7,886 nt of DNA from Zygophlyctis sp. KS116 (Eukaryota > Fungi > Chytridiomycota), in the NCBI GenBank assembly GCA_054661495.1, contig BAAFSQ010000396.1, positions 1 to 7,886 of the forward strand. Direction: 5' to 3'. This document shows, one piece after another, positions 1-3,008 of the stretch. Position 1 is the first letter of the stretch; each line of letters starts with the position of its first letter. The translations under genes were made by a program, and so were the position numbers. The notes beneath the pieces are model-generated. The model worked only from the letters and a program-made list of their open reading frames with translations, ran no database searches and was not told where the DNA came from.

Positions 1-1777
1 TGATTTCGAATGTGGAATCATCTATACGATAGTATTGTCCGACCATAGTATCAAAAGTCCAATAATAGCCCGTTGCACTATCATATATATCGGGATTCTG
101 GCTTTCACTTGAGTCTGATGTCGAGCCATCTGAGACATCACCGGAAGCTTCGCTAGAAGTATCTGAAGCGGTATCATCGGAGGCCGTATCATCTGAGGCC
201 GTATCAGCAGAGGCCGTATCAGCAGAGGCCGTATTAGCAGAGGCCGTATCAGCAGAGGCTGCAGAAGAACCGGCAGAAGAATCAGTGAAAGAACCAGCAA
301 AAGGATCGGCAGAAGAATCAGTGAAAGAACCAGCAAAAGGATCGGCAGAAGAATCAGTGAAAGAACCAGCAAAAGGATCGGCGGAAGGATCGGTGAAAGA
401 ACCAGCAAAAGGATCGACAGAAGGATCGGTGAAAGAACCAGCAAAAGGATCGACAGAAGGATCGGCGAAAGGATCGGCAGTACTATCAAAAGAAGTTGCA
501 AAAGGATCGTCATAAAATTCGGGCATTTGACCGGATCCTTCATCGAAAGCCGGCGCAGATTCAGAGCTTCCACCAAAAAATGTATAAAACGCAGCTAGTC
601 CAACTCCAGCAAAGATAATTTTTTTAGCATGCTGTTTGATCCAACTTGGTTTGGGTTTGGCTGCTTCGAGCACTGACATTGTACCAGAGCTAGGATTTCT
701 GCCATAATAATGATGATGGACTTCCTTTACTCGAGATGGAGATCCTACGTTAGATGAAGATCCTCCAGGAGATTGTGGTCTTGCATTAGATGGAGATCCT
801 AAGTTAGATGAAGACCCTCCAGGAGATGAAGACCCTACGTTAGATGAAGATCCTCCAGGAGATTGTGGTCTTGCATTAGATGGAGATCCTACGTTAGATG
901 CAGATCCTCCAGGAGATGAAGACCCTACGTTGGATGAAGATCCTCCAGGTGATTGTGGTCTTGCATTAGATGAAGACCCTCCAGGAGATGAAGACCCTGC
1001 GTTAGACGAAGACCCTCCAGGAGATTGTGGTCTTGCATTTGACCCTGAAGTACTTGCATCACCAAAAAAGTGTTGAGCTTGTCCTGAGGAATGTCTGTTA
1101 GGTGGGACCTGGGGAACTTCAAGCGATGATGGGCTGTTGACTTGAATGTTAGGTGGTCGAGCACCCGAATTTGGAAAACCGGGGGGTGGTGCTTGAGGAC
1201 CCGAATTTGGAATCGTTATTTCTCTGGGAATATCAGGATTTCGTCCACTACCAACACTTTGAGATGATGGTACATCTGCTTTTCCGAAAAGTTTGCCTAG
1301 AAAACTGAAACGACTCCTCCTCTTCAATCCAGTGCCTTCATTTTGAGATATAATGTCGTCAAGGACCTTTTTTAATCTGCTGACGAGCAAGTTAGAATTC
1401 ACAGCTGCAGCATTCTTTACTTCCACAGCAGGATTTCCTTTTAGAGTACCGTTACCACTCTTTTCATCAATGATAAAATAAGTCTCGTCCACATCCACAT
1501 TATGTGCTGCATCATTTATGGTCTTAATAGCTTTGGGCTTGAACTGAGTGTAGATGTTTTTAGTGTAGTTGAAGGAATAATCAAAACAGTCTTCTATTGT
1601 AAGATTTTGGTTACTAGCAGCTGCACATTGCTCGTTGGCCATATCATTGGTAAAGTTGTATAAAGTCTTTTGGGTTTGATTAAGAAATACCTCGATGGTA
1701 TGTTTTATCTGTGCTTGACTTGGTTGACTAGCTAAAGCTACTGATATGATTGAAACAAGAACTAGTACAAGCTTCAT
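1..1777 (-). CDS. Secreted/membrane repeat protein of unknown family, 3'-partial (>=592 aa); candidate Kex2-processed effector with DPF-repeat tail
   Basis: Manual translation from the ATG at 1777 (context GAAATG) finds no stop down to position 2, so it runs off the window, which probably explains its absence from the ORF track. It starts MKLVLVLVSIISVALA|SQP (signal peptide). It has five N-x-T sequons and 2 Cys in aa 17-151, then LKRR-SRFSFLGKLFGK, Pro-rich and SPGGSSS repeats, KKIIFAGVGLAAFYTFFGG, DPFAGSFTDxSx repeats, SADTA repeats and YDSATGYYWTFDTMVGQYYRID. All repeat units are multiples of 3 nt. Confidence 0.9.
   Translation of the reverse strand, partial: MKLVLVLVSIISVALASQPSQAQIKHTIEVFLNQTQKTLYNFTNDMANEQCAAASNQNLTIEDCFDYSFNYTKNIYTQFKPKAIKTINDAAHNVDVDETYFIIDEKSGNGTLKGNPAVEVKNAAAVNSNLLVSRLKKVLDDIISQNEGTGLKRRSRFSFLGKLFGKADVPSSQSVGSGRNPDIPREITIPNSGPQAPPPGFPNSGARPPNIQVNSPSSLEVPQVPPNRHSSGQAQHFFGDASTSGSNARPQSPGGSSSNAGSSSPGGSSSNARPQSPGGSSSNVGSSSPGGSASNVGSPSNARPQSPGGSSSNVGSSSPGGSSSNLGSPSNARPQSPGGSSSNVGSPSRVKEVHHHYYGRNPSSGTMSVLEAAKPKPSWIKQHAKKIIFAGVGLAAFYTFFGGSSESAPAFDEGSGQMPEFYDDPFATSFDSTADPFADPSVDPFAGSFTDPSVDPFAGSFTDPSADPFAGSFTDSSADPFAGSFTDSSADPFAGSFTDSSAGSSAASADTASANTASADTASADTASDDTASDDTASDTSSEASGDVSDGSTSDSSESQNPDIYDSATGYYWTFDTMVGQYYRIDDSTFEI
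167..256 (-). repeat. Coding tandem repeat, 6 x 15 bp, S(A/D)(D/N)TA
   Basis: Plus-strand unit GGCCGTATCAGCAGA and variants; translates SADTA SANTA SADTA SADTA SDDTA SDDTA in the 1777 frame. Confidence 0.9.
272..451 (-). repeat. Coding tandem repeat, 5 x 36 bp, DPFAGSFTD(S/P)S(A/V)
   Basis: Plus-strand unit GGCAGAAGAATCAGTGAAAGAACCAGCAAAAGGATC and near-identical copies; two further DPF codon triplets at 467-475 and 500-508. Confidence 0.92.
734..1039 (-). repeat. Coding higher-order Ser/Gly/Pro repeat (36-, 36- and 18-bp units; 90-bp super-period)
   Basis: Units A=NARPQSPGGSSS, B=N(A/V)GSSSPGGS(S/A)S, C=N(V/L)GSPS in the order A-B-A-B-C-A-B-C-A-C (102 aa). Positions 741-800 and 831-890 are nearly identical. 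Confidence 0.92.
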
Positions 1778-1797: not shown

Positions 1798-1879
1798 GAG
1801 CGGCACATTGCCTTTTAAAGACAGTTGCGGCATGTGCGGCATGTGCGGCAACTAGAATTAAGATGCAATATGCGGCCAC
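1798..1879. promoter_or_regulatory. Clustered GCGGC motifs in a divergent promoter, including a 9-bp tandem (TGCGGCATG)x2 plus TGCGGCA
   Basis: Tandem at 1826-1850, with extra copies GAGCGGCAC (1798-1806) and TGCGGCCAC (1871-1879), in the 177-bp gap between divergent ATGs. Regulatory function is inferred. Confidence 0.45.
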
Positions 1880-1954: not shown

Positions 1955-3008
1955 ATGACTGCAACGTTAACGGTGATTGATAATTCATCGTCAGACTTTT
2001 TACTCACTTGCGCATTGGAAATTAATTCCTCTACAAATTATCCTAAATCCTCATATACGATTTCCAAAAGAATCTCAGAGTTTGAAAGTCTCTACAACTA
2101 CTTGAGTAATGCATGTAATAATAGTATCATTTGTCCTCCGCCATTTGTCTCATCAGACTCAAACTTTCTAAAAAACTCTGCATCGAAATTCCTAGAATCT
2201 ATTATTGATAATTCTGCTCTATTAGAGAATCCAGTCGTTTTAAATTTCATCACATCTCAGTTTGCGGTAATTATTAATCCTTAAAATCTAGTTTTTAGCA
2301 CCAAAATCACCTCCATTACCACGTAAATCCACGGGAATATTCTCATTTAATAACCAAATTCAAGATGTTGATACTTTTTATGAACAAGTTTGGGACAAGA
2401 TTTCCTTTTTATTATCTAGACTTGAATCTATTGGTCTCTGTCTCTCTAAAACTGTTAAAAATGGAAATATGTTATCTGATCTAAAAACCTTTTGTACTGA
2501 TATAAATCCAGTTTTTGAGTTGCTGGAAATTTCAAAATTAAAATCAGTATTTACTGCATTACAACTTGAAGAAATTAAGAGATTAGACTATCAAGGTGGA
2601 GTTTTGAATGATGAATTAATATATATTGTAAGATGGTTAAATGGAGTCAAGGTAAGAATAATCTTAAACTTATTAAAGAAATCTCTTTTATACCGTCATT
2701 ATCTACTTGAAAAGTATGAAGCAGCGTGTCTAAAAACATCAAAAAAATTAACAAAATTAGAAAAACTAAAGGCATCAACTTCAATTGGATCTAGTTCTGT
2801 TGATACTGTTTTAGAAGAATTTACTGTAATTAAACAAGAAGAAGGAATTGCAAGATCTGAATTTAGAAATATTTCAGAAGATCTTAAACCCCTAGTAGTA
2901 CATCACATGAATGAAATAGAATTGGAATTAATAGGGATATGGGGAAGATGGTCTAATTTCCAAAGAGAAAATTGTGGTCTTGGACGAATAAAGACTCTAA
3001 ATTCTTGA
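1955..3008 (+). CDS. VPS17: PX-BAR sorting nexin, Vps17-like retromer subunit; exons 1955-2266, 2292-2651, 2679-3008 (~333 aa)
   Basis: PX motifs (KRISEFESLYNYL..ICPPP..LLENPVVLNFI). A 25-nt intron joins the two track ORFs in frame (SQFA|FLAPKSPPLPRKSTGIFSF). The BAR C-terminus K.SLLYRHYLL...KLEKLKASTSI...VDTVLEE resembles fungal Vps17. Confidence 0.8.
2267..2291 (+). other. Spliceosomal intron, 25 nt
   Basis: GTAATTATTAATCCTTAAAATCTAG; removal is needed to bypass the stop at 2282-2284 and restore the frame into the 2469 ORF. Confidence 0.85.
2652..2678 (+). other. Probable spliceosomal intron, 27 nt, in frame and stopless
   Basis: AAG|GTAAGAATAATCTTAAACTTATTAAAG|; strong donor, same size class as the other introns. 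Removal gives VK|KSLLYRH, matching the Vps17 helix spacing. Confidence 0.65.

Follow-up and report, generated by a model that had tools for sequence, protein, structure and literature searches.

Chytrid precursors with a shared folded pro-domain, a predicted kexin site and sequon-poor payloads exchanged at that site

Precursors that couple a conserved prepro part to a kexin site and a variable mature part are already known from K2PP (Kex2-processed pro-domain) effectors, KEPs (Kex2-processed repeat proteins) and alpha-factor. Crinkler (CRN) proteins and other polymorphic effector/toxin families join a conserved N-terminal part for delivery to C-terminal payloads, which are exchanged where the two meet at a fixed point; they are arranged in tandem arrays. 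The K2PP effectors SnTox3, ToxA and SIX1/4/6 of plant-pathogenic fungi comprise a signal peptide, a pro-domain and an LxxR/KR site with an aliphatic P4, served by a single kexin; for their pro-domains, which often have no secondary structure and precede folded soluble effectors, a chaperone role has been proposed (PMC8528282). The glycosylated pro-region of prepro-alpha-factor promotes secretion and is cut off at KR, so that the product carries no glycans (PMC12141369). Toxoplasma GRA5 and GRA64 insert in the host-facing membrane after their secretion, with the N-terminus towards the host cytosol (PMC9426488).

The family analysed here resembles these systems in part. Like K2PP effectors, its members have a signal peptide, an N-terminal pro-domain in the first half and a Kex2 motif, and a kexin is encoded. 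Unlike in K2PP effectors, however, the pro-domain is folded and conserved (three helices plus a hairpin, pLDDT 88-93), and it is the mature part that varies; this part is poor in Cys, for the most part disordered and usually equipped with a membrane helix. The glycan-rich pro-part, the cut site and the glycan-free product, all predicted here from sequence, recall alpha-factor; yet there is one cut and one long payload, with no repeated short peptides split by KR/RR as in alpha-factor and KEPs, and the precursors add a 135-aa folded pro-domain, a membrane helix, a C-terminal module and dozens of unrelated payloads. A signal peptide, one helix and low-complexity flanks are shared with GRA5, GRA6, GRA14 and GRA64, an analogy in the possible way of working; no sequence relation to the GRAs was found, and the cleavable pro-domain common to the family sets it apart from them. 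It differs from CRN in giving no Pfam CRN hit, in a helical header with one hairpin that is not ubiquitin-like, in its classical signal peptide and kexin site, and in its non-enzymatic membrane payloads. Our literature search found no folded orphan pro-domain, helix-bearing payloads swapped at a cut site or sequon depletion of this kind, nor any description of the pro-domain family.

The stretch analysed (the window, 7,886 nt) is the entire contig C396 of a 12.7-Mb, 1175-contig assembly. Its minus strand is open from position 1777 to 2 over 592 codons without a stop, bearing out the preliminary description of a hidden frame of at least 592 aa, which is absent from the ORF list because it runs off the contig end. 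The leftward extension proposed there yielded the stop codon: two independent metagenome contigs, L009, which overlaps window positions 31..1 (31/31 nt), and L059, which carries an allele of the window gene, each add five further codons and then a stop. The coding region at 2..1777 thus holds aa 1-592 of a precursor that is most likely 597 aa long, its final five codons and stop lying beyond the contig end. A tandem paralogue lies downstream in both L009 and L059, and contig C12 ends with the 3' part of the L009 paralogue, next to an ILVD gene that is 99% identical, so that C396 and C12 probably adjoin in the genome. This downstream paralogue changes payload and helix part-way between samples (L059:1856-2741 versus L009:302-1462 and L024), which suggests mosaic alleles or a third tandem copy. 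The frame had also been described as richer in GC than its neighbours. The figure holds (0.44 against 0.32 elsewhere in the window), but the excess sits in the repeats, owing to the Gly, Pro, Ser and Ala that they encode; the pro part reaches only 0.37 and the remainder of the gene 0.46. A pro-domain dN/dS of 0.38 between the window gene and its tandem paralogue, together with mostly synonymous differences in other runs (13 of the 22 listed), supports the frame as coding, and we regard the gene as real. Two metatranscriptome runs contain contigs on the gene, which, DNA carry-over being possible, do not amount to proof of transcription.

All parts of the protein named in the preliminary description were found, in the same order and places, on the minus strand. 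The signal peptide (aa 1-16; 1730..1777), recognised by eye and by hydropathy, has a hydrophobic core and Ala at -3 and -1. It is followed by the conserved pro-domain (aa 17-150; 1328..1729), modelled by AF2 as three helices and a beta-hairpin (pLDDT 88), with Cys51 and Cys64 flanking the first loop and five N-glycosylation sequons. The Kex2/kexin-type motif LKRR (aa 151-154, with KRR at 152-154; 1316..1327; PMC8528282) is the only dibasic cluster of the protein, the repeats being free of KR. Upon the predicted cleavage, an amphipathic, acid-poor segment (aa 155-168; 1274..1315; moment 0.52) would be the new N-terminus. The payload as a whole (aa 155-386; 620..1315) is basic (19 K/R versus 7 D/E), has Pro/Ser/Gly repeats, HHHYY at 354 and a basic run before the helix, and contains 17 Asn and not one N-x-S/T sequon; nested tandem repeats of 36, 54, 72 and 90 nt, whose copy number differs among alleles, encode its Pro/Ser/Gly units (733..1039). 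A single hydrophobic helix (aa 387-403, up to 405; 569..619) was assigned from hydropathy, with a KD19 of only 1.49, and its N-side flank has a net charge of +5, its C-side flank one of -4. Beyond it lie acidic repeats with DPF motifs (271..508; 5.6 copies of a 36-nt unit plus two upstream DPF), an acidic Ser/Thr spacer of 15-nt SADTA/DDTA repeats, delimited by repeats and composition (161..259), and a C-terminal aromatic module of 10-residue repeats (2..94), which the model of a relative renders as a four-strand beta-meander (pLDDT about 90).

Residues 17-154 match paralogues on contigs C13, C56, C97, C1141, C804, C243, C944 and C256, and a relic on C89. The proposed search of the same genome for paralogues with pro-region and KR thus returned about 15 copies, a lower bound given that the array is collapsed in the assembly: identical pro-domain DNA with differing payloads stands at the contig ends of C13, C944 and C256. 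Seven family genes form a tandem array on C13 between a syntaxin-like gene and a DCN1 gene, and eight occupy the equivalent locus of a second species (DCN1 79% identical). A profile search of 1.84 billion representatives uncovered 46 clusters at 50% identity that share the pro-domain, a domain of about 135 aa modelled with pLDDT 88-93. All ten entries looked up came from metagenomes (ENA, JGI or Logan assemblies) and none had a functional name. The motif [LIV]x[KR]R ends the pro-domain in 57 of 62 members, with Leu (45), Ile (10) or Val (2) at P4, and the single kexin P-domain locus of the genome, on C48, encodes a subtilase part, a P-domain above cut-off and a TM tail. The Kex2-type site that had been proposed is therefore a family trait (aliphatic P4, Lys/Arg at P2, Arg at P1), matched by a kexin in the genome, and in the window precursor kexin would cut after Arg154.

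No named family accounts for the pro-domain. Pfam assigned no shared family to the whole window protein and 44 pro-domains, and a PDB sequence search with the pro-domain was blank. The HMMER and Foldseek lookup recommended in the preliminary description brought no family or fold match beyond generic helical bundles (Foldseek against the PDB, best E 1.6); fold searches with the pro-domain in VIA (best Z 7.1, rmsd 6-8 A, to BAR domains and apoA-IV), Atlas (best TM 0.41; ESM Atlas features gave nothing) and the viral set BFVD (best E 0.29) were equally uninformative, as was a fold search with the full-length model, in which the tail was barely covered. Narrow scans of viral and prokaryotic contigs, with a subfamily alignment as query, yielded no relatives. 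A relation to BAR domains was rejected on rmsd, Z values under about 13 being uninformative for bundles. The idea of a lineage-restricted precursor outside any named family is supported.

Some loci carry variants of this design. In three species the array opens with pro-domain-only genes that have neither Lx[KR]R nor payload (L006:6716-7231, that is C13a; L072:6715-7218; L076:3927-4367); these genes evolve under purifying selection (dN/dS 0.17) and could act in trans. A pro-domain variant of about 75 aa that has no hairpin (L006:7419-9467, C13b/c; L076:4526-6269) retains the same LxKR, a sequon-free payload and the helix, and barely scores on the family HMM. A decayed copy with a stop and frameshifts lies at the C89 end (L035:2950-3250); this relic and a frameshifted L059 allele were taken as they stand. 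With hhalign, the pro-domain hairpin (aa ~98-112) aligns to a single repeat of the tail module over 15 columns at a probability of 60%, a similarity that may be chance.

Past the cut site, members are mostly unalignable to each other. Four tandem pairs, drawn from two species, keep a nucleotide identity of 28-30 of 30 across almost the whole pro-domain; at the KR codons, or no more than about 15 codons past them, it drops to background. C13f and C13g, for instance, share 94% identity ahead of the site and 21% beyond it. Payloads have thus been swapped as cassettes. No intron marks this boundary, so the 5' cassette has likely undergone partial duplication or been gene-converted. The swapped segments are not junk, as the payload (with helix) of C13d is more constrained between species than its own pro-domain (dN/dS 0.13 versus 0.30). 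Payloads span 26-500 aa and are Cys-poor. Their first 14 residues hold more F/W/L/I/Y (p=5e-8) and fewer D/E (p=3e-7) than the rest and are more amphipathic than the remaining payload (family trend p=0.006), which extends the amphipathic new N-terminus of the preliminary description to the whole family and adds its aromatic/aliphatic, acid-poor character.

About half of the database entries have one hydrophobic helix, strongly hydrophobic in several members (KD19 2.5-3.0). Its N flank is the more basic one in 23 of 32 members (mean +2.8 versus +0.2). In one subfamily, the helix is split by a GT-AG intron that is very short and contains an in-frame stop (L042:1011, L043:1950, L045:1122 and 2649); database proteins are truncated there and their tails called as separate genes because of it, and the exons of such members were examined one by one, without joining. 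The member at L044:1620-3644 has no helix; an 8-residue Tyr/Asp/Pro/Gln repeat recurs in it many times, and its pro-domain is 90% identical to that of a helix-bearing neighbour. This helix-less member retains the aromatic tail, so this tail can, by sequence, be secreted.

The aromatic module ends at least 14 family members. The preliminary description had called it OCRE-like, a label that did not hold: neither OCRE nor WW is hit by the window tail in Pfam, relatives stay below the OCRE cut-off (PF17780, 24.7 bits; best single member 22.1), and the alignment has a repeat period of 10 residues, not the 8 of the OCRE octamers with their aromatic triplets. Partial matches to WW (PF00397, cut-off 26.9 bits for a full model that includes both Trp; model positions 7-28) occur in 8 of 14 tails, and only P0029, with four repeats, rises above that cut-off, through summed partial matches (model positions 8-28). 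What the tails share with OCRE/WW is a small Tyr-rich antiparallel beta-meander with D-x-x-T-G-x-Y-Y turns, of which the P0036 model is a confident four-strand example, and weak HMM hits in about half of them; the period of 10 and the placement on a secretory-pathway protein are unlike either. Nor did a DPF/AP-2 mechanism of the Eps15/epsin kind, DPF/AP-2 being also raised earlier, survive as a family feature. The window protein has seven DPF (424, 435, 443, 455, 467, 479 and 491), P0045 and P0049 (near-identical members) have one each and all others none; five of the seven lie in one 36-nt tandem repeat whose copy number varies among samples, and the tandem paralogue has DPY/DPN where the array sits. 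Should its tail be cytosolic, the array could still be functional in the window protein.

N-glycosylation sequons evidenced a sharp partition of the precursors. We compared counts with local shuffles after removal of near-duplicates, the sequences being not fully independent. Pro-domains contain 95 N-x-S/T sequons against 53.0+-6.4 expected, whereas the stretch between cut site and helix contains 4 against 51.5+-6.3 (48 non-redundant payloads, 358 Asn) and the tails a neutral 19 against 14.4+-3.1, with tandem N-S-T/N-T-T sequons in some. Control motifs in the payloads are normal (N-S/T 57, N-x-x-S/T 65, S/T-x-N 58), and in cytosolic and nuclear ORFs from this genome sequons are not depleted (38 versus 32.6 expected). 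Six genes found afterwards behave likewise, with a single sequon ahead of the helix. Such avoidance would be sensible only for a payload that travels through the ER lumen and is harmed by a glycan, which would point to a chain that enters or crosses a membrane or works in the cytosol.

We tentatively favour, as quite possible, a kexin-activated carrier-and-payload system in which a glycan-free basic segment enters or crosses a target membrane. The precursor would enter the ER, where its glycosylated pro-domain would serve as a throw-away cap or carrier and keep the payload soluble and inactive; kexin would cut after Arg154 in the late Golgi; and the freed amphipathic, basic N-terminus would lead the glycan-free segment into or across the target membrane until the helix brings it to a halt. 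That membrane would most likely belong to the host or substrate cell, where infection takes place. The payload would then face the target cytosol, with the basic flank inside, and its function there would differ from one payload to the next; the acidic stalk and the aromatic module would remain outside as spacer and tether, and the DPF repeats would be part of the spacer, without AP-2 binding. This proposal draws on the 46 clusters with the pro-domain, [LIV]x[KR]R in 57/62 members and the kexin on C48; on sequons enriched in the pro-domain and near-absent from the payload; on the N-side basic bias of the helix and the aromatic/aliphatic, acid-poor first 14 payload residues; on the helix-less member that keeps the aromatic tail and the sequons of some tails; on pro-domain-only genes kept in three species under purifying selection; and on the precedent of GRA5 and GRA64, which are secreted in soluble form and then inserted in a membrane (PMC9426488). 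Against it, helices with KD19 of 2.5-3.0 would normally halt translocation in the fungal ER and give a type I protein, and neutral sequon counts in the tails are exactly what a cytosolic tail would lead one to expect. WW/OCRE-like modules and DPF motifs are usually cytosolic, and we know of no soluble-then-insert route in fungi. The full-length model (pTM 0.52, helix pLDDT 50-60, no confident pro-domain/helix contact) does not decide between this and a type I topology. That the mature part acts on membranes, as the preliminary description supposed, would still be the most likely reading of the sequences. A wider version is possible but doubtful, namely that the pro-domain is a general carrier for the soluble secretion of single-pass proteins, from which kexin would release payloads to be threaded into a host, probably algal, membrane. 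It is similarly tentative to regard this, by analogy, as a fungal counterpart of apicomplexan dense-granule membrane effectors in which payload cassettes are swapped.

The main rival of the carrier-and-payload system, unlikely though not far-fetched, holds that these are type I membrane proteins of the fungus itself. Kexin would uncap a glycan-free cationic ectodomain, which would work on the surface of the cyst, germ tube or rhizoid as an adhesin, a sensor or a fusogen-like spike, and the acidic tail and WW/OCRE-like module (here with DPF too) would serve trafficking control in the fungal cytosol, a version that takes in the self-endocytosing surface protein first suggested. Type I is the default topology for a signal peptide with one hydrophobic helix; it explains why the depletion ends at the helix and why the tails match the cytosolic control, and it suits a tail that folds as a WW/OCRE-like beta-meander. 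The Gly/Phe-rich new N-termini are reminiscent of cleavage-activated fusion peptides. The depletion boundary is nonetheless explained equally by the carrier-and-payload system, and type I accounts less well for the depletion itself, as surface stalks normally gain glycans rather than lose them, and for the reversed charge bias of the helix. Payloads of 26-33 aa could hardly reach beyond the wall, helix-less members exist, one with the same tail, and the DPF array belongs to one gene only.

Improbable, in our judgement, are precursors of released cationic peptides (antimicrobial, lytic or glue-like) aimed at bacteria, competitors or anionic host surfaces, with helix and tail as leftovers or secondary anchors. 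A conserved prepro part with a variable mature part and the glycosylated pro-region match prepro-alpha-factor (PMC12141369), the new N-termini are amphipathic and acid-poor, and some payloads are strongly basic and have no helix. Killer toxins and amphibian skin peptides have a comparable design. A second conserved processing site is, however, generally missing, the payloads are Cys-poor and 26-500 aa in length, purifying selection acts more strongly on at least one payload-plus-helix than on its own pro-domain (dN/dS 0.13 versus 0.30), and the aromatic tail is conserved across subfamilies. A little more improbable still are structural or storage proteins of a secretory organelle or cyst coat (encystment vesicles), with the pro-domain as sorting or aggregation signal: a common upstream motif suggestive of stage-specific co-expression, an array position conserved between species and many low-complexity payloads would fit, but near-total sequon loss, rapid payload replacement and allelic repeat variation would be left unexplained. 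An artefact, that is, a frame held open by GC-rich repeats with no gene, might be argued from repeats making up most of the frame and RNA support by contigs only, but is already refuted by dozens of homologues with the same architecture, purifying selection in dN/dS, a confident fold and independent samples, and has next to no probability left.

A marker gene of the C13 region matches only metagenome proteins and, at 31%, Gorgonomyces haynaldii, a Rhizophydiales chytrid; the fungus analysed here is probably a member of Rhizophydiales too. Metagenomes in which the window DNA is found are chiefly those of lakes and other fresh waters. From the habitat, the small genome and the clade, the fungus may be a parasite of phytoplankton. 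To our knowledge, almost nothing is known of the molecular basis of chytrid attachment, entry and host reprogramming in phytoplankton. The genome of one phytoplankton-parasitic chytrid includes many hypothetical proteins among its highly expressed genes (PMC13391722). The combination of the pro-domain HMM, LxKR and a sequon-free payload could tag a candidate effector repertoire in lake chytrids, comparable to RxLR or PEXEL elsewhere. Whether the precursor is soluble or type I, and the effect of an added glycan, are predictions checkable in yeast, with no need for a culture of the fungus. If the pro-domain does keep hydrophobic payloads secretable, it would constitute a membrane-protein delivery route of which we have seen no description in fungi.

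Five copies of GCCGC, mostly as TGCCGCA, lie within 100 nt upstream of the ATG of the window gene (1798..1878, minus strand) and constitute a candidate cis-regulatory element. Of 13 family genes, 8 have TGCCGCA/GCCGC in the 110 nt that precede them, against 2 of 18 control genes (Fisher p=0.006), the motif being present at the C13e/f/g, C56, C97, C804b, L009 and L076 genes as well as in the window. Genome-wide, TGCCGCA followed by ATGAA 10-40 nt later was counted 67 times versus 11 for the reversed control; the motif is a candidate mark of a regulon of co-expressed genes. The C56 family gene (L018:282-2994) lies between two related secreted genes, which may be of the phosphate-induced-1/EXORDIUM type. 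The neighbours in the window are ordinary compact eukaryotic genes (PX, Dcp1, DnaJ, ankyrin and FHA). Among them, a PX-domain ORF followed by a helical ORF (1955-3008) is probably one intron-split sorting nexin, and its transcription is divergent from that of the family gene, with 177 nt in between.
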